IMG/VR virus record: IMGVR_UViG_3300013094_000017
Coordinates: 62,001-126,000 of that record
DNA length: 64,000 nt
Direction: 5' to 3' (one strand)
This document shows, one piece after another, positions 3,675 through 64,000 of the stretch. The notes under the pieces are model-generated. The model saw only the letters and a list, made by a program, of their open reading frames with translations, was not told the DNA's origin and made no database searches. A program made the position numbers and the translations under genes. Every line of letters begins with the position of its first letter. The stretch's first letter is position 1.

Positions 3675-4441
3675 AGATTGGAATTATCGGATTAGGATTC
3701 GTAGGTGGTGCTGTTAAGGCAGCGCACGATTTAGTAGGTATTGAAACAGTTGATGTAGATCCTCATAAGGGATTGCCAGCAACATTAGCTGATGCTAAAG
3801 CGTGTGATGCTATCTACATCTGCGTGCCTAGCCCTATTGGATCAGATGGTGCTTGCGATACCAGCATCTTAGAAAACGTTATGGAACAGCTAACAGATTA
3901 CACTGGCCCTATCATTAGTAAGGTCACTGCGCCACCTAGCGTATATGTTCGCTTACAAGAAAGTCATAAGAATCTTATTCATGCTCCAGAATTCTTAGTT
4001 GCGGCAACTGCTAACGAAGATTACATCAACGGTACTTATGCCATTATCGGTGGATATGAACCTTATGCTACTCAGGCAGAAGCGGCTATCTTGGCAGCGC
4101 AACGCCGAGTAACTAACATTACTAAGATCGGAATAGGCGAGGCAGCATTAACAAAATATGCTATCAATACATTCTTATCTACAAAAGTTATCTTTATGAA
4201 TGAGCTAAAGGCACTTGCTGACGCTGCTGGAATTGATTACAATGTAGTTAAAGATACTATTCAGTTTGATTCACGTCAGGGTAATAGTCATTTTGATGTA
4301 CCTGGTCCAGATGGTAAGTTTGGATTCGGTGGTGCTTGCTTTCCAAAAGATACTTCGGCATTATTAAAATACGCTGAAGGATTAGGAGTTGAGTTAAGTG
4401 TATTAGCAAGTGCTGTGGCGAAAAATAAAATCATTCGTTAG
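3671..4441 (+). CDS. UDP-glucose/GDP-mannose dehydrogenase family protein, lacking the C-terminal domain
   Basis: GLGFVG Rossmann motif, CVPSP, PEFL, catalytic GFGGACFPKD; only 256 aa. Confidence 0.85.
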   Translation: MKIGIIGLGFVGGAVKAAHDLVGIETVDVDPHKGLPATLADAKACDAIYICVPSPIGSDGACDTSILENVMEQLTDYTGPIISKVTAPPSVYVRLQESHKNLIHAPEFLVAATANEDYINGTYAIIGGYEPYATQAEAAILAAQRRVTNITKIGIGEAALTKYAINTFLSTKVIFMNELKALADAAGIDYNVVKDTIQFDSRQGNSHFDVPGPDGKFGFGGACFPKDTSALLKYAEGLGVELSVLASAVAKNKIIR

Positions 4442-4514: not shown

Positions 4515-5213
4515 ATGGTAGCAAAATACACACCAGTTAGCGAAACTATTCGCAACAACTTAAAGAAAGACAACAAACGTTTCTGGGCTGGAGATAACAT
4601 CTCAGAATACATCACAGAAGAAAACAAAGCCCTATTAATTGACGAAGCAACTCTAGCATTTGAAGGTGTGCTTGATACATTGTTAATTGATCGTGAAAAC
4701 GATCCTAACAGTCATGGTACAGCTAGACGTTTAGCCAAAATGTACTTTAATGAGATCATGGCCGGACGTTATGAACCTAATCCAGATGCTACAGCATTTC
4801 CAAATGACAGCGAAGATCGTTATGAAGGTATGCTAGTAGTTCGCAGTGAACTACGCAGTATGTGTAGTCATCATCACCAACCGGTGGCGGGGGTTGCGTA
4901 TATTGGGATTATTGCCGCTCAAAAGCTCATTGGTTTGTCTAAGTACACTCGTATTGCTCAGTGGTGTTCTCGTCGTGGTACTCTACAAGAAGAACTATGT
5001 AATGACATTGCTAGAGAGATTATGAAAGCAACAGGTAGTGAGGATGTAGCAGTTTATATAGAAGCCGAACACGGATGTTGCGTTAATAGAGGCATAATGG
5101 CACATTCGAGCTTAACCCAAACAACTGTATTACATGGTGCGTTTAAGAATGACTCAAGTACCAAAAAAGAGTTCTTTGATAATATCAAACTACAAGCAAG
5201 AAACGGCAAGTAA
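4515..5213 (+). CDS. folE: GTP cyclohydrolase I
   Basis: MCSHHHQP, IGLSKYTR, LQEEL, EAEHGC zinc and substrate motifs. Confidence 0.95.
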   Translation: MVAKYTPVSETIRNNLKKDNKRFWAGDNISEYITEENKALLIDEATLAFEGVLDTLLIDRENDPNSHGTARRLAKMYFNEIMAGRYEPNPDATAFPNDSEDRYEGMLVVRSELRSMCSHHHQPVAGVAYIGIIAAQKLIGLSKYTRIAQWCSRRGTLQEELCNDIAREIMKATGSEDVAVYIEAEHGCCVNRGIMAHSSLTQTTVLHGAFKNDSSTKKEFFDNIKLQARNGK

Positions 5214-53862: not shown

Positions 53863-54699
53863 ATGTTAATTCAAGTAGAGAAGTATATTAATCGAAAATC
53901 AGTTCGCCAACAAGTTACAAAAATTGACGATGATATTATTATGTCATTAAGTGAAGTGGTGAACCACTTTGGTGATAATGTATTCAATAGGAATAAATCA
54001 ATCTTTTCTCAACAAATTATTGAAAATACAATACCCACTATGATAGTAAACGGGGTGAAAGATTTAAAAGGTAATTTAATAAAATTACAGTCTGTTAAAA
54101 GAAACACCTTAGAGCATTACATCTTAATATATAACAACAATGCTAAAGACATTTATAAAGAAAAAACTGATAAAAGTCTACAAACTAAGGAAAATTTTAT
54201 AAAGAGGCATGGAGAAGAACAAGGCAATATGTTGTGGAATCGCTACTCTCAAAATAAAAGTAAGCAGAATACATTAGAAGGATTCAAAGAAAGATTTGGA
54301 AGTACTACAGGCGAAGAAAAATTTAAAGAATATAGTAATCGACAAAGATATACAAACAGTATAGAATATTATATTGAACAATACGGCAACGATCTTGGTG
54401 AAGAATTATATTTACAACGGTATCCGGCATACGAGTACGGTGGAGATTACAAAGATTATAAAAATGCTGTTTATCGGTTAAGCCAGAAAATATATGAAGA
54501 AAATATCAAAATTATTAATCCTAACAACTATACTAGGACTCGAATGGGAGTTAAAGATGGGTGGCAACTAGATCATATCAAACCAGTAATAGAATGTTTT
54601 AAAGAGGGGTTAACTATTGAAGAAGCATCTAATATTAAAAATTTACGAATGTTGCCTTGGAAAGAAAATTTAATGAGGAATTTTAAGTGTTTAAAATAA
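53863..54699 (+). CDS. free-standing HNH-type homing endonuclease
   Basis: Three F/Y...G...G repeats and C-terminal QLDHIKP...NLRMLPWKEN; inserted between gp47 and gp46; likely ATG 53863 after AGGA. Confidence 0.75.
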   Translation: MLIQVEKYINRKSVRQQVTKIDDDIIMSLSEVVNHFGDNVFNRNKSIFSQQIIENTIPTMIVNGVKDLKGNLIKLQSVKRNTLEHYILIYNNNAKDIYKEKTDKSLQTKENFIKRHGEEQGNMLWNRYSQNKSKQNTLEGFKERFGSTTGEEKFKEYSNRQRYTNSIEYYIEQYGNDLGEELYLQRYPAYEYGGDYKDYKNAVYRLSQKIYEENIKIINPNNYTRTRMGVKDGWQLDHIKPVIECFKEGLTIEEASNIKNLRMLPWKENLMRNFKCLK

Positions 54700-56486
54700 A
54701 AAATTTGATTGTGAAAAATTTCATGTCAGTAGGAAATGTTTCACAGGCTGTTGACTTTGATAAGGAACATCTCACATTAGTCCTAGGTGAGAACTTAGAT
54801 TTAGGTGGAGATGACAGCGGCTCACGCAATGGAACCGGCAAGACCACTATTGTGAATTCTCTAAGTTATGCTCTCTATGGGCAGGCCTTGACAAATATCA
54901 AGAAAGAGAACTTAATCAACAAGATCAATCAAAAAAATATGTTGGTCACTGTTGAGTTTGAGAAAGATGGTACCAAATATCGTATCGAACGAGGTCGTAA
55001 ACCTAATATCCTTAAGGTTTATATCAACGATCAGGAGCAACAAGATCAGTCTGAAGTAGATGAGTCACAAGGTGATAGCCGCGAAACACAGAGATTTATT
55101 GATCATGCATTAGGTATGAGCCATACTATGTTTCGCCATTTAGTTGCATTGAACACATATACTGAACCATTCTTGAGTATGCGAGCCGCCGAACAGCGCG
55201 AAGTAATTGAACAACTGTTAGGTATCACTTTGTTAAGTGAAAAGGCAGAAGTGTTAAAGACATTGGTTAAAGAATCTAAAGATGCTGTACAGGTTGAAAC
55301 ACTTCGTATTGACAGCATTAAGAATGCCAATATTAATGTTCAGAAGAGTATCGATAGTTTGGCATTAAAGAGTGCCGCTTGGAATACCAAGAAGGAACAA
55401 GATATCGAAAGCCTTGCTAAGGCCATGATGCGATTAGAGAATGTTGATATCGAAGCCGAGTTGGAATCACATGCTGCTCTTAAAGTATGGGACGAGCAGA
55501 ACAGCAAACTAAAAGATTTAATCAAACAGAAGTCAAGTTATGACACTGCGCTAGGTCAGGCTGAGAAAACTGTTAAAAAGTACGAACGTGATGTCATAGC
55601 CTTAGCAGATAAGAAATGTCCACAATGTGAACAGGATCTGCACGATCACAAACATGAGCTATTGATAGATGATGCTACTAAAAACCTAGAGGATGCATTG
55701 GCATATCAGCAGTCAGTGACTGCACACTCAACTGCATTACAGGAACAGATTGCTGCGATCAACGATTTGCCTGTTAAGCCTATGACGTTTTACGACACAC
55801 ATGCAGAAGCACTTGGCCATAAAAACAATCTCGATAACCTAGAAAGGGCGTTGACTACAAAAATAGAAGAAGTTAACCCTTATGCTGAGCAGGTTGAAGA
55901 ACTAAAAAATACAGCTCTACAAGAAATCACTTGGGATACGGTAAATGCACTTACTCGAGTCAAAGATCACCAAGAGTTCTTGCTTAAACTATTAACCAAC
56001 AAAGATAGTTTCATCCGTAAAAAGATAATTGATCAAAACTTAAATTATCTAAACAAACGATTGAGCTATTATATCGAAACCCTAGGATTGCCGCATAGTG
56101 TAGTATTCTTAAATGATCTAACTGTTGAGATTACACACTTTGGTCAGGACTTAGACTTTGATAATCTAAGTCGCGGCGAACGCAATCGATTAATATTGTC
56201 TATGAGTTTTGCATTCCGCGATGTTTGGGAAAACTTATACCAAAGTATTAACTTACTGTTTGTAGACGAGCTCATGGATTCCGGTCTTGATTTAGCAGGA
56301 GTAGAAGCGGGGCTAGGAGTTCTTAAAAAATTATCTAGAGAGAGAGATAAGAACGTTTATTTAATTTCTCACAAGGAAGAATTAATTGGCCGGGTTAACA
56401 ACATACTCCGCGTTGTAAAAGAAAATGGATTTACTCATTATGCTACAAATTCTGAATATATAGAACCAAATATAGTCACGAACTAA
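54687..56486 (+). CDS. gp46: recombination ATPase (Rad50/SbcC-like)
   Basis: Walker A NGTGKT, zinc hook CPQC, signature LSRGE, Walker B LLFVDE, ISH. Confidence 0.93.
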   Translation: MFKIKNLIVKNFMSVGNVSQAVDFDKEHLTLVLGENLDLGGDDSGSRNGTGKTTIVNSLSYALYGQALTNIKKENLINKINQKNMLVTVEFEKDGTKYRIERGRKPNILKVYINDQEQQDQSEVDESQGDSRETQRFIDHALGMSHTMFRHLVALNTYTEPFLSMRAAEQREVIEQLLGITLLSEKAEVLKTLVKESKDAVQVETLRIDSIKNANINVQKSIDSLALKSAAWNTKKEQDIESLAKAMMRLENVDIEAELESHAALKVWDEQNSKLKDLIKQKSSYDTALGQAEKTVKKYERDVIALADKKCPQCEQDLHDHKHELLIDDATKNLEDALAYQQSVTAHSTALQEQIAAINDLPVKPMTFYDTHAEALGHKNNLDNLERALTTKIEEVNPYAEQVEELKNTALQEITWDTVNALTRVKDHQEFLLKLLTNKDSFIRKKIIDQNLNYLNKRLSYYIETLGLPHSVVFLNDLTVEITHFGQDLDFDNLSRGERNRLILSMSFAFRDVWENLYQSINLLFVDELMDSGLDLAGVEAGLGVLKKLSRERDKNVYLISHKEELIGRVNNILRVVKENGFTHYATNSEYIEPNIVTN

Positions 56487-56511
56487 TAGATTGTTTATAA
56501 ATACATATATA

Positions 56512-57306
56512 ATGTCAAACACTGTTACTTCTTTTGTCTATTGGATACATCTGCAATCGCATCAAGATATGCTGCTACAAGGATACATTGGAGTTTCAAT
56601 TAATCCAGAAATTCGATTAAATGATCACAAGAGCGAATCTACCAAATTAAATCCTATTAATCCTGTGTTAGCTAGTGCTTTTAAAAAATATTCAACTCAG
56701 ATTATTCAAGATATTGTATTTACGGGGTCAAACACCGAATGTTATGCTTTTGAAGAGCGTATTCGCCCCACCCCACACATAGGATGGAATATCAATAAGG
56801 GCGGAGTATGCCCTCCTTCACAAAAAGGAAAGCATCGGTCGGCATTAACAAAAGAAAAAATAAAAAATAATAGCTTAAAGCAGGGAACAAATAGAACAAT
56901 AGAGTATGTTAAAACCCATCAAGATGTTATTTACAAGGTGTTATCTATGATCTTAGAAAGAAATCGATGTGTTACTATTTTAAGAGAAACTGGAATAACT
57001 CGAGATTTATATAACAAAATTAAAAAAAAATATCTAACATATATTGAGTTATTAAACACCCATACCGATTATACTTTAATAGCAGACCATATTAAAAAAA
57101 CAAACGGAATGCAGCAAAAGGTATTTTCTGATAAAAAAGAGCTTTTAATAGAATTATATAGATTAATAAATCTCAATATTAAACGAAAAATTATTCTATC
57201 TGAATTGGGCATCTCTCCTGCATTTTATGGGAGATTTAGAAACAAAGAGTTAGAATTTATATCGTATTACAACTCACAATCTACTACCGGCGGTGATACA
57301 CAATGA
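56512..57306 (+). CDS. GIY-YIG homing endonuclease
   Basis: VYWI...GYIGVS...R..H, GWNI..GG, NUMOD3-like KGKHRS..TKEKI, HTH-like tail; TATAAATA at 56496-56503. Confidence 0.82.
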   Translation: MSNTVTSFVYWIHLQSHQDMLLQGYIGVSINPEIRLNDHKSESTKLNPINPVLASAFKKYSTQIIQDIVFTGSNTECYAFEERIRPTPHIGWNINKGGVCPPSQKGKHRSALTKEKIKNNSLKQGTNRTIEYVKTHQDVIYKVLSMILERNRCVTILRETGITRDLYNKIKKKYLTYIELLNTHTDYTLIADHIKKTNGMQQKVFSDKKELLIELYRLINLNIKRKIILSELGISPAFYGRFRNKELEFISYYNSQSTTGGDTQ

Positions 57307-57548
57307 TAAACAAGTATGTAGAATTACATGAGAAGTTTATGGACCTGCTGGCCAAGTATCATAATGCTCATGTAGTGTTTATCAATAAACCAAACTTCTG
57401 GAATACTCGAGAGTTCCTTGGTATTATGATAAGCATGAGTAAGGTAGTTAAAGAAATTAGAAAAAATAATATCGCCATGCGCAAAGAAATGCAGATAGCG
57501 ATAAAGGCTAGAAAGAAAGTTATAGCAGAACATAAAAAGGAGAAGTAA
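57303..57548 (+). CDS. basic helical hypothetical protein
   Basis: 81 aa with a Lys/Arg-rich C-terminus. Confidence 0.65.
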   Translation: MINKYVELHEKFMDLLAKYHNAHVVFINKPNFWNTREFLGIMISMSKVVKEIRKNNIAMRKEMQIAIKARKKVIAEHKKEK

Positions 57549-57550
57549 AC

Positions 57551-57745
57551 ATGAGTTCAACCCAAGCAATCCAAGACGCAGTAGTAGCATTCGTAGCAGA
57601 AGACGCAAAGTTCACAGCAGGTAATTCAGCAGCAGGTACTCGCGCTCGTAAAGAGTTAGCTGAGTTAGGCAAGTTAGTTAAAGCTCGTCGCAATGAAATT
57701 ACCGCAGAAAAAAACGCTCGTAAAGAAGCTAAAGCTGCCAAGTAA
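57551..57745 (+). CDS. histone H1-like (Hc1 family) nucleoid protein
   Basis: KF.AGNSAAGTRARK.L.EL.K....R and a Lys/Ala tail; highly biased codons. Confidence 0.8.
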   Translation: MSSTQAIQDAVVAFVAEDAKFTAGNSAAGTRARKELAELGKLVKARRNEITAEKNARKEAKAAK

Positions 57746-57748
57746 TAG

Positions 57749-58195
57749 ATGTCTTGGACGTATCAAGGCATATTAGTCGAAACGCTACCTGAAGATTGTG
57801 TTGGTTATGTATATCTTATAACCTGCATACCTTCGGGGCGCAAGTATATTGGTAAGAAGCTGGCTAAGTTTGCAAAGACTTCTTACAAAACAGTAACATT
57901 AAAAAATGGTACTAAGAAAAAGAAAAAGATCCGCAGCAAGATTGACAGCGACTGGCAAGAATATTTTGGATCTAGTGTAGAGTTATCTGCTGATGTCTTA
58001 ACATTAGGGGTTGACCAGTTCACTCGAGAAATATTATACTACTGTAAGTCAAAAGCAGAATGTAGCTATCTTGAAGCACGCGAACAGTTTGAAAGAAAAG
58101 TTTTAGAATCCTCTGATTATTACAATGGTATAATCAGTTGTAAGATACATCAATCACACATTAAAAATTTAGACACCAAGTCACACTCCTACTAG
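57749..58195 (+). CDS. compact GIY-YIG-like nuclease
   Basis: GYVYLIT...RKYIGKK, YFGSS, FTREIL, YLEAREQ, YYN. Confidence 0.75.
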   Translation: MSWTYQGILVETLPEDCVGYVYLITCIPSGRKYIGKKLAKFAKTSYKTVTLKNGTKKKKKIRSKIDSDWQEYFGSSVELSADVLTLGVDQFTREILYYCKSKAECSYLEAREQFERKVLESSDYYNGIISCKIHQSHIKNLDTKSHSY

Positions 58196-58699: not shown

Positions 58700-59452
58700 A
58701 TGAGAATCGAAGAATTATTAGCTGAACAACAATTAGATGAGTTAGGTTGGAAGAATGGTACTCCCACAAATGATGATGGAACTCCTTTACCTAAGAGTGG
58801 TATTGCTCAGGGTGTAAACAAAGTAGCTGGTGGTATAGGTAAAGCTGTAGGAGGAGTTGCAGGTGCATGGCAAGCTGCTAAACAAGGATATCAAACAGGT
58901 AAAGCTGCTGTATCAGGGCAAGGATCAAATACTCCCACGCAACCTAATGCCCCTGCTGGTCAAGGATCTAATGTAACTACTGGTAATCAAACCTCACAAG
59001 GTGATACCCAAACAGTTGGTACTACTAAAACTGTAGGACAAACACAAACAACTCCCCAACCTAACACTGCAACTGCGCCTAGTGCGCCTGCTGGTCAAGA
59101 ACCTGCACCACCTGCTAATACAGCACAAGCTGATCAACAGGCTAAAGTTGGAGTAGGTCAAATCAATAAGATTATTCCCGGATTACGTACTCGTGATCTA
59201 CAAAGTCTTAAGAAAACTATTGATCAACGTATGCAAGCAATGAATAAAACTCCTAATCCTACTGGACAACAAACTCCTAATCAAGGTAATCAAACAGTGA
59301 CCGCTGCTAATACTGTAGCAAATGCACCTGCAGGACAACAATCTAATGTGGGTAAATTTTCTGGACAACCGGCGAATGTAACACAAGGCAATCCGTTAGC
59401 AATGGCAGAAAGCGCAGAATTCTACAGCAAGTTCCTAGGAAAGAATATTTAA
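58700..59452 (+). CDS. low-complexity protein, probable internal head/virion protein
   Basis: Late promoter, MRIEELLAE..LDE start, Gln/Thr/Pro-rich. Confidence 0.6.
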   Translation: MRIEELLAEQQLDELGWKNGTPTNDDGTPLPKSGIAQGVNKVAGGIGKAVGGVAGAWQAAKQGYQTGKAAVSGQGSNTPTQPNAPAGQGSNVTTGNQTSQGDTQTVGTTKTVGQTQTTPQPNTATAPSAPAGQEPAPPANTAQADQQAKVGVGQINKIIPGLRTRDLQSLKKTIDQRMQAMNKTPNPTGQQTPNQGNQTVTAANTVANAPAGQQSNVGKFSGQPANVTQGNPLAMAESAEFYSKFLGKNI

Positions 59453-60694
59453 ATGAGAATGTCGCAAATTATCAGCGAGTCGTATCTATACGAAGGGTTA
59501 GATAACAGTGCTACTCACACTATGCGTCTATGGGAAAATGCCGGTCGTAAGATTGTAGAAGCAAACTTAGACGCAGCAACTATTCAAAAAATATTCACAG
59601 CAGCAGAACAAGGTGCAAGTGCAGGTGGTGATAATCGTACCTTACTTGGCCTAGGTAAAGATGCTGCTACCGCTGTAAAATCAGCCTATGACGATCTAGT
59701 AAGCAAAGTACAAAATAGTGGCCCAATTAACGGCATTGATGCCAAATACGATCTGGCTGCTGAAAAATTAAAAGCTGCTACTGGTGGTGATCAAGGTGTG
59801 ATGAAGTATGTACAAAAGTATAGAGACTTTGCTAAAGCACACCCTATTGCACAAAGTTTAATCTATTCAGCATTAATAGCAGCCGCAGGTATTAGTGGTG
59901 CAGGAGCAGGTGGCGCAGCAGCACTAGGCTTGCTAAAAATGACCGACAAATTATTACAAGGTGAGAAATTTAGTACCTCAGTTGGTAAAGGTTTAGCCAC
60001 AGGCGGTATGGCATTTGCAGCTAGTAAGTTAGGTGATCTAATCAAAGGAGTTAAACCTGGCGAACAAGTTCCTCCACCAAGTGCAGGTGCAGCAGGTAAT
60101 CCAAACTATTCTAAGCTCGATTTTGCTCATAACGATTATTATCTAAGTCCAAGAGGTGATATGACGGTAGCAGTGCCTAAAGGATACGGTAGTCCTTGGC
60201 AAGAAGGAACAAAAGCGTTTGATATTCGCCAACAATTAGCAAATGCTAATTCAGCAAACGAAAGCATCAATTTATCTAAAGATGCCCTTGCAGAAGTGTT
60301 TGCCGCAGTTACAGTTAATATGATTAACGAAGGATTGTGGGATGCTGTTAAATCTAAAGTAGGCCAAGCAGCAGATGCAGTAGCAAGTAAAGCACAGCAA
60401 GTTGGTCAAAACTTAACTAACAAAGTTACAGCAGACAAGCTAAACAGTGCATGGCAAGCAGCAGGATCGCCTACCGATAGTGAACAGGTTAAACAGGTGT
60501 TAATCAATGCAGGTGTACCTGAAAATGTTGTTGCAGATGTTTATAAACAAATGAAGATTACTTCAGGTAACGATCGACCTAAATTAACTGTTAAACAGAT
60601 TAATCAAATTATTCTTAAATTAAGATTAAGAGATTTACAAAGTCTACAAAAATTTGTTAATGCTGCATTACAACAGCGAACAAAAACTTCTTAG
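59453..60694 (+). CDS. Ala-rich probable internal head/virion protein
   Basis: MRMSQIISE..LYEG start, internal INEG; shares the LR.RDLQSL motif with the upstream gene. Confidence 0.6.
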   Translation: MRMSQIISESYLYEGLDNSATHTMRLWENAGRKIVEANLDAATIQKIFTAAEQGASAGGDNRTLLGLGKDAATAVKSAYDDLVSKVQNSGPINGIDAKYDLAAEKLKAATGGDQGVMKYVQKYRDFAKAHPIAQSLIYSALIAAAGISGAGAGGAAALGLLKMTDKLLQGEKFSTSVGKGLATGGMAFAASKLGDLIKGVKPGEQVPPPSAGAAGNPNYSKLDFAHNDYYLSPRGDMTVAVPKGYGSPWQEGTKAFDIRQQLANANSANESINLSKDALAEVFAAVTVNMINEGLWDAVKSKVGQAADAVASKAQQVGQNLTNKVTADKLNSAWQAAGSPTDSEQVKQVLINAGVPENVVADVYKQMKITSGNDRPKLTVKQINQIILKLRLRDLQSLQKFVNAALQQRTKTS

Positions 60695-60909
60695 AAGAAC
60701 GGTAAACCACTTTCTTTAGTGGTTTCGAGATTGCTTTCGATTATCTTACTGATAGCTTCTCGATCTTGTAGGTCTAATTCGTAGGCTTCGGTTATAGTCA
60801 CACCTCCCCGCATAAACCAGCATATTCTAAATAAATCTTCTTTAACGGCTCTTGTTTCGTTTTCCATGTCCTTGACAAGCTGGTTGATCTCGTCAAGGGA
60901 TAATAACAA
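60691..60909 (-). CDS. gp51-like baseplate/tail assembly protein, possibly expressed by a -1 frameshift from the upstream gene
   Basis: 72 aa, CWFMRGG; TTG start without an obvious RBS; in the -1 frame of the gp26-like gene. Confidence 0.65.
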   Translation of the reverse strand: MLLSLDEINQLVKDMENETRAVKEDLFRICWFMRGGVTITEAYELDLQDREAISKIIESNLETTKESGLPFF

Positions 60910-60914
60910 AAGCC

Positions 60915-61781
60915 TTATGCGAAAAAATTTGATTGATCAAATATAATAGGAATTTCTATTTCCTCCGGAGAACCTGATGCAATCATATCATCTGTTGCAC
61001 GGACCTTTATCGGTTTAATAGAGTTTTTTTCTCTTAAATTATCTAATCTGTCTTTAATGGTATTAAAAATCTCTCGGTCACACTGATCGAAAAACTCTTT
61101 AATAAAATCAGTATCAGTGACCTGCCCAGAAGCTGTATCAATCCTGTACACTGATGATGTTACAATTCCTAACGTTACTTCAGTTAATTTATTAAAACTG
61201 TCTTTAAATAAATTTAGTTTTTCAGCTTCTGAAATAGTATCATCACTGACAATATTCATAATGCGTTGAGTTTCAAAAGTCTCTACTCCGGCCTTAGATA
61301 TTTCTTGATAAGTTAACGGTCGTACATAAGCAACTATGTTATCTCCTACTGTGATTTGTTCTTCCCAGGTAATTGTATTATATAAATTATCTAATAATAA
61401 TTGTAAATTAATTGAATAAGAAGCATCTTGCCCGAATACTGTTACTGTAGTCTCCATTTCTTCTCCGTAGGTAGCCATTCGAATTGCTATTAATAGTGCA
61501 TCGAGATCTAAATTTGGAGTTTTCCAAGCATCTTTAATATTAGGAATACAACTTTCCAATACATTAACAACTGCCTGGCCATTAAGCAATGCATCGGGAG
61601 TCTTTAATATTAGTTCATCTTTAGCTGTCATAGAATATACCGGGTATTCTCCGTTAGTAGAAATTTCTAAACTCCCCTCAGGCCAATATTGTCCGTTGCT
61701 TGGTAATTTAACATAAATCTTAGGTTGTCTCATTAAACTAGCCAATGGATTTACTTTAGGTTGTTGTGATGGGTTTTGCAT
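60915..61781 (-). CDS. gp26: baseplate hub assembly protein (gp26-like)
   Basis: YVKLPS.G, MTAKDELILKTPDALLNG, DLDALLIAIRMATYGE, C-terminal NFFA. Confidence 0.8.
   Translation of the reverse strand: MQNPSQQPKVNPLASLMRQPKIYVKLPSNGQYWPEGSLEISTNGEYPVYSMTAKDELILKTPDALLNGQAVVNVLESCIPNIKDAWKTPNLDLDALLIAIRMATYGEEMETTVTVFGQDASYSINLQLLLDNLYNTITWEEQITVGDNIVAYVRPLTYQEISKAGVETFETQRIMNIVSDDTISEAEKLNLFKDSFNKLTEVTLGIVTSSVYRIDTASGQVTDTDFIKEFFDQCDREIFNTIKDRLDNLREKNSIKPIKVRATDDMIASGSPEEIEIPIIFDQSNFFA
60921..60930 (-). promoter_or_regulatory. candidate -1 ribosomal frameshift site
   Basis: A AAT TTT TTC contains two overlapping X XXY YYZ heptamers, one codon before the stop. Confidence 0.6.
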
Positions 61782-61853: not shown

Positions 61854-64000
61854 ATGGCTAATGTAACAGGACAAATTGGACAAGAATCGGTAGTATTAGA
61901 AAACGCAGCCACAGAAGCTACGCTAAAACTACTATTACAAGCAGCTCTAGCCACTACCAAAGCACAAAAAGATGCGGTTAAAGATCTTGCTACTAAAGTA
62001 ATCGGTGATCCTGCTAAAGTTGAAGAATTTAATCAAGAGGTAAGTAAATCCGGAGGAGTTATAAGAACTACTGCTGGAGCTTTTGGCGGGCTTACTGCGG
62101 CTGGACAACAACTACAAGTTGGGTTTAACAAAACTGTTGACGTTGTAAGCAAATTAGTATCAGGAACAAACCAAGCAAGTGATGTGTTTGGTGCTATGAA
62201 AAATTTACCTCTCGGTATAGGATTAGTAGCCTCTGGATTTGAAATATTAGCAAAATATCAAGAACAACAATTAAAAGCATATCAATCGATGTCATCAGCA
62301 GGAGTAAACTTTGGTGGCAGCTTAAATGCAATGAAACTAGCTAGTTTAGAGTATGGAATGACCATGGAACAATTCTCTAATGTGATGAAAGAGAATGGTA
62401 AAGCATTTGCATTAATGGGCCCAACAGTTGAAGCTGGAAAAAATCAATTCTTAAAAATGAATAAGGAATTGATTAACGGTGATATAGGATTACAATTAAA
62501 AAATCTAGGATTAACCGCTGAGGATATATCAAACGGATTTGCAGGATTTATACAAATGCAAGGTGGGTTAGGTGCTACTCAGATTAAAGATCAAAAAGCA
62601 TTAGAAGAATCATTTCATAATTATACAAACGAATTAGATATGATGACTCGATTAACAGGTGAAACAAGAAAAGAACAACAAGATGCACAAGCCCAACTTA
62701 AAAATGATGCAGTCTTCCAAAATGAATTAAGCAAACTAGTTGCCTCTGGAAAAATAAACGAGGCAAATCAACTTAAATTCTTAGGTGAACAAGCTAAAAT
62801 AAAAGGTGCCGGAGCTTTTGATAATCTCATCGGCACGTTAACCAATACTCAACCAGTGACTGCTGCAGGAAGAGCATGGGCAGGGGTTCAGAGTGAACAA
62901 ACTAGGTTACAAGGGGAATCTGTTAAATTAGCTCTTGAAGGAAAATTAAATAGTCAACAAGCAGTTAAAAGCCAGTTAGAACAACAGGCTGCGATGGCAA
63001 AAACAACTACTGCGTTCGGAGCATCAGCTTCGGTAAACGCTAGAATGAATAATGAATACACAGAAGCGATGACTGCTGGGTTAAAAGCCGAATCAAATGT
63101 TAGATTGAAAGGGCTTAATACCCAAGAAGGTATAAACGCTGCAATGGTTGCGGCACAAAAAGAACAAGAAGATATTGCAAAAAAAGCCACAGAAGTTAAA
63201 GCCGCTAATGAACGACAAGAGGAAATGGCAAAACTATCTCAACATATAATGGAAACTTTAATCCCTATCATTAATCAAGCATTACCTCAAATGAACAAAT
63301 TTATTCAAGGATTTAGTGATGCAGTAAGTTGGATGAGTAAGAATGCTAATACATTAAAGTTGATAGGTGAATCTTTATTAGCAGCGTATGTTACTGCTAA
63401 AGCAGTTCAAGGAGCAAAAGCCGCATATGGAGTCGGATCTAAAGTAGCAGAATTTATTGGAGGTGGTAAAGGTGCCGCAGGAGTAGCAGAAGGAGCAATA
63501 TCAAAAGGACCGTTAGCCGCAGTTGAAGGCGCAGCAGGTGGTGGCGGAGGTATAGCAGGATTTATACGCAGCATGGGTATGGCATTAGCAGCACTTGGTC
63601 CCGAGGCTCCGTTAATTGCAGCCGGTGCAGCCGCAGTTGGAGCAGCTATAACATTAATCGGCGCAGGCATTGCAGGTGCAACATGGTTAATGGGCAAAGC
63701 ATTACCGTCACTAGCCTCAGGATTAAAAGCGTTTGGAGATATTGACGGAGTTAATTTAATCAAAGTAGGCGCAGGAATTGCAGCACTTGGATTAGGATTA
63801 GGAGCATTCGGTGCAGGCAGTGCATTAGCCGGTGCAGGCGGAGTAATTGAAGGATTAACATCTGGACTTGGTAAGTTATTTGGTGCTAAGAGTCCTATTG
63901 ACAAGATTAAAGAATATGCTGCATTAGGTCCAAGTTTAGAAAAATCTGGTATAGGTATAATGAAATTTAACACAGGATTAGCACAACTACTAGCCACCGA
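61854..64000 (+). CDS. tape measure protein (partial, runs off the window)
   Basis: ATG after AAGGA; MANVTGQIGQESVVLENAATEATL...; frame open at all positions checked up to the window end; Ala/Gly-rich helical and hydrophobic segments. Absent from the ORF track, presumably because there is no stop in the window. Confidence 0.8.
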   Translation, partial: MANVTGQIGQESVVLENAATEATLKLLLQAALATTKAQKDAVKDLATKVIGDPAKVEEFNQEVSKSGGVIRTTAGAFGGLTAAGQQLQVGFNKTVDVVSKLVSGTNQASDVFGAMKNLPLGIGLVASGFEILAKYQEQQLKAYQSMSSAGVNFGGSLNAMKLASLEYGMTMEQFSNVMKENGKAFALMGPTVEAGKNQFLKMNKELINGDIGLQLKNLGLTAEDISNGFAGFIQMQGGLGATQIKDQKALEESFHNYTNELDMMTRLTGETRKEQQDAQAQLKNDAVFQNELSKLVASGKINEANQLKFLGEQAKIKGAGAFDNLIGTLTNTQPVTAAGRAWAGVQSEQTRLQGESVKLALEGKLNSQQAVKSQLEQQAAMAKTTTAFGASASVNARMNNEYTEAMTAGLKAESNVRLKGLNTQEGINAAMVAAQKEQEDIAKKATEVKAANERQEEMAKLSQHIMETLIPIINQALPQMNKFIQGFSDAVSWMSKNANTLKLIGESLLAAYVTAKAVQGAKAAYGVGSKVAEFIGGGKGAAGVAEGAISKGPLAAVEGAAGGGGGIAGFIRSMGMALAALGPEAPLIAAGAAAVGAAITLIGAGIAGATWLMGKALPSLASGLKAFGDIDGVNLIKVGAGIAALGLGLGAFGAGSALAGAGGVIEGLTSGLGKLFGAKSPIDKIKEYAALGPSLEKSGIGIMKFNTGLAQLLAT

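Follow-up and report, generated by a model that had tools for sequence, protein, structure and literature searches.

A giant freshwater phage, like its many relatives, very probably produces a short and a long version of a tail-baseplate assembly protein from one gene through a programmed -1 ribosomal frameshift, while phage T4 makes the equivalent pair from two separate genes (26 and 51). The analyzed sequence (the window) is a stretch of 64,000 nucleotides, corresponding to positions 62,001 to 126,000 of the IMG/VR record IMGVR_UViG_3300013094_000017. The evidence for the frameshift is comparative and does not include detection of the fusion protein. In literature searches, which do not cover subscription journals, no published report of this frameshift was found, and no proteomic report of a junction peptide was found. 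The features of the locus are as follows.

60915..61781, minus strand: gp26-like gene in the 0 frame (288 aa, ATG start); the short product ends ...DQSNFFA.
60921..60927, minus strand: slippery heptamer T_TTT_TTC in the X_XXY_YYZ phase, the proposed -1 slip site, with tRNA-Phe in both the P and A sites.
60924..60930, minus strand: a second heptamer, A_AAT_TTT, not conserved and probably irrelevant.
60915..60917, minus strand: 0-frame stop codon TAA, one codon after the heptamer, in the spacer before the stem.
60691..60927, minus strand: -1 frame extension, FF plus 76 new residues (RIRLLLLSLDEI...GLPFF), with the stop at 60693-60691.
60905..60914, minus strand: 5' arm of the downstream stem (GGCUUUUGUU), starting 6 nt after the heptamer.
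60847..60856, minus strand: 3' arm of the stem (AACAAGAGCC), forming 10 bp with 60914-60905.
60870..60898, minus strand: inner hairpin (CCUUGAC ... GUCAAGG) enclosed by the long stem, part of the MFE and centroid structures.
61854..64000, plus strand: divergently transcribed tape-measure-like gene, 821 aa in full, running off the window end.

The preliminary description proposed a -1 frameshift fusing the gp26-like gene to a 72-aa ORF with only a TTG start, through two overlapping heptamers, and everything it described is present in the sequence. The gp26-like gene ends TCA AAT TTT TTC GCA TAA. The -1 frame opens at 60936, 19 nt before the stop, and the 72-aa ORF (60909..60691) is in this phase and corresponds to the 3' part of the 78-codon reading frame that runs from the T-run to 60691. 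The predicted products are 288 aa and 363 aa (287 + 76). One correction is required: only T_TTT_TTC is conserved. The codons preceding TTT TTC vary (AAT 39, AGT 11, GAT 5, GCT 1, and CAT 1) and are themselves preceded by various bases, and therefore A_AAT_TTT was rejected as the functional slip site. The T-run is not an assembly error, as contigs from independent lake and freshwater runs cover it without any indel.

The heptamer is invariant and in phase in all 82 loci first analyzed, which represent 57 distinct junctions with 29-53% protein identity to the window, a median pairwise identity of 43%, and 22 clusters at 60% identity. Five further isolate phages also carry it in phase, as T_TTT_TTC in Cassandra, Phosso, Munch, and Serratia BF, and as T_TTT_TTT in Xoo-sp13. 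The 8-nt string TTTTTTCG is the only fully invariant run across the 57 junctions, while the flanking codons vary freely. The Phe-Phe codons and the preceding third position show no synonymous variation. TTTTTTC occurs only twice elsewhere in 47,043 nt of the same ORFs, and other Phe-Phe pairs in those ORFs use all four codon combinations (TTCTTT 9, TTTTTC 7, TTTTTT 7, and TTCTTC 1). From codon usage in these ORFs, the expected frequency of xxT TTT TTC is about 0.1 per independent lineage, and the conservation is far more than chance would give. One search pattern used to find the loci was IFDQSNFF, which biases the set towards the amino-acid motif, though not towards the synonymous sites, and many loci differ at those residues.

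The frame relationship is always -1. In the 57 junctions, the 0-frame stop falls 1, 3, or 4 codons after the heptamer, and in four further isolates it falls 3-11 codons after; overall it moves between 1 and 12 codons after the slip site, and the 0-frame tail is not conserved. The -1 frame, in contrast, keeps 78 codons (71-79 in the most distant isolates) and the motif FFRxR[LIV]L. An alignment of 49 sequences of the extension is conserved from position 1, with FFR, W37, and G41 invariant. The extension is predicted to fold as a confident helical domain (pLDDT 92.5). No start codon is conserved: 17 of 57 junctions have no ATG, GTG, or TTG in the first 26 of the 78 conserved codons, and five (L012, L024, L033, L044, and L046; L numbers denote individual loci) have none before codon 38. 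Gene callers begin the small ORF at profile positions 1, 4, 7, 8, 10, 12, 21, 35, or 39. In all eight isolate genomes examined (Rak2-like, PA5oct-like, Atu_ph07-like, and XacN1-like groups), the extension is annotated as an unrelated small hypothetical gene with an arbitrary start, or not at all.

A stem of typically 8-15 bp begins 3-6 nt after the heptamer in most loci. The median uninterrupted helix is 9 bp, against 6 bp at 4,527 control positions. The 3' arm sits at four different offsets and RNAalifold on all sequences gave no consensus structure; the structure was therefore analyzed by positional class. Two classes are both about 85% paired, and 0 of 500 shuffles reach the observed covariation score. 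In the class including the window, 84.6% of cells are paired and 5 pairs change on both sides; for example, Atu_ph07 has GGCUCUUUGU paired with ACAAAGAGCC. In the window, the MFE is -24.6 kcal/mol with a z of -3.79, and 0 of 200 shuffles fold as well. The stem is weak or displaced in some members, with 4-6 bp within the 3-10 nt search window in L008-type, L048, L056, L075, and CBB/GAP32. No upstream Shine-Dalgarno-like stimulator was seen by eye.

The gp26-like protein belongs to the T4 gp26/gp51 family. It matches PF12322 (T4_baseplate) with 42 bits against a cut-off of 24.5 (E 1.1e-10), and phrog_150 "baseplate hub" with E 8.3e-15. Its AlphaFold model (pLDDT 87.5) showed as top hits in BFVD "Baseplate hub assembly protein, bacteriophage T4-like" models (E 2e-21, TM 0.84/0.85), with 57 hits at E<=1e-3. 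Searches of the models of both parts against PDB (Foldseek and VIA-align) and Swiss-Prot AlphaFold models revealed nothing specific; weak hits to the HK97 tail chaperone and to Xylella/SPbeta prophage proteins are not evidence.

About 25 metagenomic PF12322 proteins of 319-351 aa carry the same extension fused in one frame, joined at the homologous ...F-R-x-K-L-I... position. One PF12322 gene is present in each of the complete genomes of Atu_ph07, CBB, and GAP32, and one in the window's own record. T4 has two (gp26 without the tail and gp51 with it), and the fused-type locus L084 has two in tandem, one without and one with the extension. The label "gp51-like" for the extension holds moderately, but homology of the extension to the gp51 tail remains unresolved. 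The fused family aligns colinearly with the T4-type gp51 family to both C-termini (hhalign E 4.9e-5, probability 68%), but the extension alone shows only weak similarity to the gp51 tail (E 2e-3, probability 13.5%), although at the right place. Alignments of the extension or of the gp26-like family against the single T4 gp51 were not significant. Pfam and PHROGs gave no significant gp51-type hit for the extension, with weak unrelated PHROG hits only, in libraries without PF28602, which gp51 homologues carry; the CBB/GAP32-type tail matches phrog_18291, which has no known function.

The neighboring gene is followed in the genome by the portal and prohead protease genes. Its tape-measure identity has no HMM support, but its protein-language-model neighbors are tape-measure clusters in 92 of 100 named hits. 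The synteny of portal, large protein, then gp26-like gene is conserved in GAP32, CBB, Cassandra, and L084. The CBB homologue, CBB_251, is an abundant virion protein with 29 peptides, while neither CBB_249 nor CBB_250 was detected by mass spectrometry of the CBB virion.

These observations are best explained by a single gene with two products. Most ribosomes terminate at TAA and make the 288-aa protein, whereas a fraction pause on T_TTT_TTC against the stem, both tRNA-Phe slip back one base, and translation continues in the -1 frame for 76 more codons. Confidence that a fusion is made by recoding at this site is high. It is inferred that the short and long forms correspond functionally to T4 gp26 (domain only) and gp51 (domain plus C-terminal tail), that the frameshift sets their ratio as in lambda G/GT, and that they act on the hub and the neighboring tape-measure-like protein. 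The T4 tail review lists gp26 and gp51 as hub assembly chaperones and states that gp51 is absent from the particle (PMC3004832). The function as a chaperone pair is only slightly more likely than not.

Transcriptional slippage cannot be excluded but is unlikely. The invariant element is a homopolymeric run (7 T here and 8 T in Xoo-sp13), and addition of one U by RNA polymerase would give exactly the same 363-aa protein. However, efficient slippage by bacterial RNA polymerases probably needs runs of about 9 or more, and the run here is held at 7 rather than lengthened. The run always sits in the X_XXY_YYZ phase, and a conserved, covarying stem 3-6 nt downstream is the classic ribosomal stimulator, with no known role in transcript slippage. 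Still less likely is the independent translation of the small ORF, from its own start or by termination-reinitiation coupling. Some members have an ATG overlapping the stop (ATGA in Atu_ph07, Phosso, L019, L021, L023, L031, and L081), and public annotations call a separate small gene. Against this, besides the absence of a conserved start, amino-acid conservation begins at the heptamer, upstream of every candidate start, and overlaps the 0-frame tail; the synonymous invariance of the heptamer would be unexplained; in-frame fusions exist in other lineages; and the TTG of the window lies inside the stem arm, only 3 nt from an AAGG. A decaying remnant of a formerly fused gene, with the T-run kept only because Phe-Phe is, can be practically dismissed: Phe-Phe is conserved even in T4 gp26 and fused ancestors plausibly existed, but the 78-codon frame is intact with constant length and a confident predicted fold in every complete locus examined at 41-63% identity, and T4 spells the same Phe-Phe TTC TTT, so that protein constraint does not explain the invariance at the nucleotide level.

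A broader hypothesis, about as likely as not, is that the gp26/gp51 hub-assembly proteins of T4-type contractile tails are the functional counterpart of the lambda G/GT pair. A "domain only" and a "domain plus tail" form would both be needed, in a set ratio, to assemble the tape measure and hub, and this need would have been met either by a programmed -1 frameshift in one gene (a large clade of jumbo phages) or by two paralogous genes (T4 and the L084-type lineage). It would offer a reason why T4 keeps two paralogues, and would extend the conserved tail-chaperone frameshift to the one major tailed-phage group in which it was thought to be absent. The tail-chaperone frameshift of lambda- and P2-type phages and the T4 gp26/gp51 proteins are already known; what is new is their inferred link with each other and with jumbo-phage tail assembly, and a deeply conserved U-rich heptamer with a "sliding" 3' stem partner, a useful natural series for studying how stimulator geometry evolves.

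The E. coli dnaX tau/gamma frameshift likewise appears to use a heptamer, a spacer of about 6 nt, and a stable stem-loop, but there the frameshift probably truncates the protein, whereas here it extends it, and dnaX probably also uses an upstream Shine-Dalgarno-like stimulator, which is not evident here. P2 gpE/gpE+E' also occurs in a contractile-tail phage, with a U-rich heptamer of the same type (probably T_TTT_TTG) and a -1 extension, but it is an unrelated protein family whose gene probably lies between the tube and tape-measure genes on the same strand.

With lambda gpG/gpGT (and the conserved frameshift described by Xu, Hendrix and Duda 2004), the present gene shares, by comparative inference, a short and a C-terminally extended product from one gene by -1 frameshifting near the 3' end, as well as adjacency to the tape-measure gene, and neither product was detected in the virion where examined (CBB). 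No homology to lambda G/GT is seen: no tail-assembly-chaperone Pfam or PHROG family was hit, and the HK97 chaperone 2ob9 ranks only 34th at Foldseek E 0.79. The gene is divergent from the tape-measure-like gene and is not placed between the tube and tape-measure genes; its far side holds unrelated ORFs and recombination genes. The lambda heptamer, likely G_GGA_AAG, also differs.

T4 gp26 and gp51 are encoded by two divergently transcribed paralogous genes without a frameshift, and gene 25 follows gene 26 directly. They group together in the tree, and thus the T4 duplication looks independent of the jumbo-phage events, although this is tentative because of long branches. Two Cys-x-x-Cys pairs (zinc-ribbon-like) present in T4 gp26 and gp51, CBB, Atu_ph07, and the fused forms are absent from the window protein and its subclade. 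The T4 proteins nevertheless belong to the same protein family, and their genes lie beside the hub and tape-measure gene block. T4 gp26 ends a few residues after the homologous Phe-Phe (...EFFELL), like the 0-frame product, and T4 gp51 has the domain plus a C-terminal tail, like the predicted frameshift product.

On the minus strand, an ATG-initiated ORF ends with TCA AAT TTT TTC GCA TAA and is followed by a small ORF in the -1 phase. The -1 frame is already open from position 60936. The features of this region are as follows.
61781..60915, minus strand: ORF of 288 aa, gp26-like
60909..60691, minus strand: ORF of 72 aa with a TTG start, in the -1 phase
60914-60905 with 60856-60847, minus strand: 10-bp stem downstream of the heptamer
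61854 onward, plus strand: divergent gene, 821 aa in full
58700-59452 and 59453-60694, plus strand: two adjacent ORFs of 250 and 413 aa
54687-58195, plus strand: block including recombination and homing endonuclease genes

The 288-aa protein matches Pfam PF12322 "T4_baseplate" (E 1.1e-10, above the curated cut-off) and phrog_150 "baseplate hub", while the small ORF has no family match. The coordinates, the two overlapping heptamers (A_AAT_TTT and T_TTT_TTC), and the predicted product sizes of 288 aa and 363 aa (287 + 76) in the preliminary description were all confirmed. The two plus-strand ORFs at 58700-59452 and 59453-60694 are rich in Q, T, N, G, and A, have no Pfam or PHROG match, and share a C-terminal motif (...I.KI.P.LR.RDLQSL.K...). 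The second converges on the extension ORF, so that the two stop codons overlap (TAG 60692-60694 on the plus strand and TAA 60693-60691 on the minus strand). The block at 54687-58195 includes a gp46-like recombination nuclease subunit (SMC_N/AAA_23), a weak GIY-YIG ORF (56491-57306), a histone H1-like Hc1 protein (57551-57745, PF07432, E 2e-12), and a SegE-type GIY-YIG homing endonuclease (57749-58195, E 2e-30). An Hc1-like protein is unusual in a phage.

Homology search with tblastn revealed the protein in 94 phage records, all large myoviruses, at about 26-33% identity. They include Atu_ph07, Phosso, the Rak2-like phages CBB, GAP32, Munch, and Serratia BF, and Cassandra of the Arenbergviridae; the small ORF as a query also found Xoo-sp13. 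A scan of viral contigs gave 79 loci at 36-53% identity, in addition to the window's own contig. The virus record to which the window belongs is 259 kb, and is estimated to be 73% complete. The DNA runs containing the window come from lake and freshwater metagenomes.

All 82 loci first analyzed, representing 57 distinct junctions, have xxT TTT TTC G in phase near the end of the gp26-like ORF. The preceding codon is AAT (39), AGT (11), GAT (5), GCT (1), or CAT (1), and thus always ends in T; the first Phe codon is always TTT and the second is always TTC. Elsewhere in the same ORFs, TTT makes up 77% of Phe codons, and T-ending codons make up 51-68% of the Asn, Asp, Ser(AGY), and His pairs. Other Phe-Phe pairs are spelled TTCTTT (9), TTTTTC (7), TTTTTT (7), and TTCTTC (1), and TTTTTTC occurs only twice more in 47 kb. 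The sequences fall into 22 clusters at 60% identity, with a median pairwise identity of 43%, and the expected chance frequency of this spelling is about 0.1 per lineage. The run TTTTTTCG is the only invariant one in the 185-nt neighborhood. One of the search patterns used to collect the loci was IFDQSNFF, which could enrich the amino acid motif but not the synonymous spelling, and many loci read SFF, DFF, AFF, or HFF at this place. Five more isolates have an in-phase heptamer: T_TTT_TTC in Cassandra, Phosso, Munch, and Serratia BF, and T_TTT_TTT in Xoo-sp13. In contrast, A_AAT_TTT, the other heptamer proposed in the preliminary description, is not conserved. In the lake run X1, other contigs match only the roughly 36 nt around the slip site (60907-60943), with 3 differences, and one of them has about 12-fold higher depth (119.6 against 9.5). 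More abundant related phages in the same lake therefore share this nucleotide island.

The 0-frame stop lies 1, 3, or 4 codons after the heptamer in the contigs and 1, 3, 4, 10, or 11 codons after it in isolates, and the 0-frame tail is not conserved. The -1 frame is always open through the heptamer. In the contigs it runs for a constant 78 codons from the Phe-Phe, except for two contig loci, L075 (77 codons) and L046 (cut off by the contig end). In the more distant isolates it is 72-73 codons (the CBB group), 75 (Cassandra), 79 (Phosso), and 81 (Xoo-sp13). It reads FFRxR[LIV]L...W[YF]MRGG...ER..I...N.E. Conservation therefore starts at the slip site, overlaps the 0-frame tail, and precedes every candidate start. 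No start is conserved; 17 of the 57 junctions have no ATG, GTG, or TTG in the first 26 codons, and five have none before codon 38, the Met of WYMRGG. Gene callers in public data start this ORF at nine or more different positions. The extension is confidently predicted to fold as a small helical domain (pLDDT 92.5).

In the window, the 10-bp stem starts 6 nt after the heptamer and encloses a second hairpin. The predicted fold is -24.6 kcal/mol with z -3.8, and 0 of 200 shuffles fold as well. Across the family, the longest uninterrupted helix whose 5' arm starts 3-10 nt after the heptamer has a median of 9 bp and reaches 15 bp, while the median is 6 bp at 4,527 control positions in the same ORFs. 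The stem is weak or displaced in a minority of loci: the L008 group, L048, L056, L075, and CBB/GAP32. The 5' arm is fixed in position, but the 3' arm lies at about +36, +54, +66, or +75, and this is why a single alignment-wide consensus fails. Within the +75 class, which includes the window and Atu_ph07, and the +54 class, about 85% of cells pair. Five and six pairs, respectively, change on both sides, and 0 of 500 shuffles reach the covariation score, whereas slid controls fall to 22-65% paired.

These comparisons support a programmed -1 ribosomal frameshift, with the 363-aa protein as its predicted product. No paper describing this frameshift was found, although the literature searched does not cover most subscription journals. 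Transcriptional slippage on the U7 run would give the same protein and cannot be excluded without RNA data, but the conserved downstream stem and the short, fixed run length favor a ribosomal slip. Independent initiation or reinitiation of the small ORF is contradicted by the missing starts, by the conservation upstream of them, and by the synonymous invariance. A dead remnant is contradicted by the intact, constant-length, well-folding frame.

A profile of the extension, searched against 1.8 billion representative proteins, found the small ORFs, and also about 25 proteins of 319-351 aa in which the extension is the C-terminus of a single frame. These proteins carry PF12322, and they join the two parts at the homologous place, ...LD..S..F-R-x-K-L-I...EEI. 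This shows that the two parts function as one polypeptide in related phages.

The complete genomes of Atu_ph07, CBB, and GAP32 have exactly one PF12322 gene each, as does the window's record, while T4 has two, gp26 and gp51. The fused-type protein P0162 lies on a 353-kb contig in the same synteny, after the portal gene and a 782-aa large protein, and there it is preceded by a second PF12322 paralogue. That paralogue lacks the extension, ends shortly after the ...GSDF... motif, and has no slippery site. An NCBI assembly shows the same pair. The two tandem paralogues at this locus (L084, 4983-7017) are of identical length (338 aa); the first has a 40-residue N-terminal addition and no extension, and the second has Cys pairs and the extension in frame. 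It is speculated that recombination between such paralogues at the shared ...D.S.F motif might be how the frameshift arrangement arose. In a tree of the shared domain, the paralogue without the extension falls inside the frameshift clade, the fused forms are separate, and T4 gp26 and gp51 group together; this is tentative, because the branches are long and the root is only a midpoint root. Thus, lineages with a frameshift have one gene, and lineages without it have a "domain only" gene plus a "domain plus tail" gene.

The divergent gene is followed by the portal and prohead protease genes. It has no HMM hit, but its nearest named clusters by language-model features are tape measure proteins, in 92 of 100 hits. 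Its homologue CBB_251 is an abundant virion protein, while CBB_249 and CBB_250 were not detected in virions. Homologues of this gene sit in the same place in at least 20 of the contig loci. It is probable, but not proven, that this gene encodes a tape measure protein.

T4 gp26 (208 aa) ends with ...KEFFELL. Its Phe-Phe is spelled TTC TTT, which is not slippery, and gene 25 follows with a one-base overlap. Gene 25 starts in the -1 frame relative to gene 26, with a TAATG overlap three codons after the Phe-Phe (3800-3830 of the T4 locus). T4 gp51 (249 aa) matches the whole PF12322 profile over residues 1-201 and has about 48 further residues, and phrog_634 "hub assembly catalyst" covers residues 147-246. 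The fused family aligns with a T4-type gp51 family alignment over 204 columns to both C-termini (probability 68%, E 4.9e-5). The extension alone aligns to the same C-terminal place, but weakly. T4-type gp51 homologues carry a second Pfam family, PF28602, which the fused jumbo-phage proteins are not recorded as carrying. The label "gp51-like" in the preliminary description is reasonable, and it is inferred that the 0-frame product corresponds to gp26 and the frameshift product to gp51. The T4 tail review lists both gp26 and gp51 as hub assembly chaperones (PMC3004832). The gp51 homologue of Acinetobacter phage Octan is annotated as "tape measure protein assembly chaperone", and thus at least one annotator has already proposed that role for gp51, although the basis for it was not found.

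The predicted structure of the gp26-like protein has no similar solved structure, and shows no meaningful similarity to lambda- or HK97-type tail assembly chaperones. The gene is not placed between the tube and tape-measure genes. By comparative inference it works like lambda G/GT, but it is not a member of that family.
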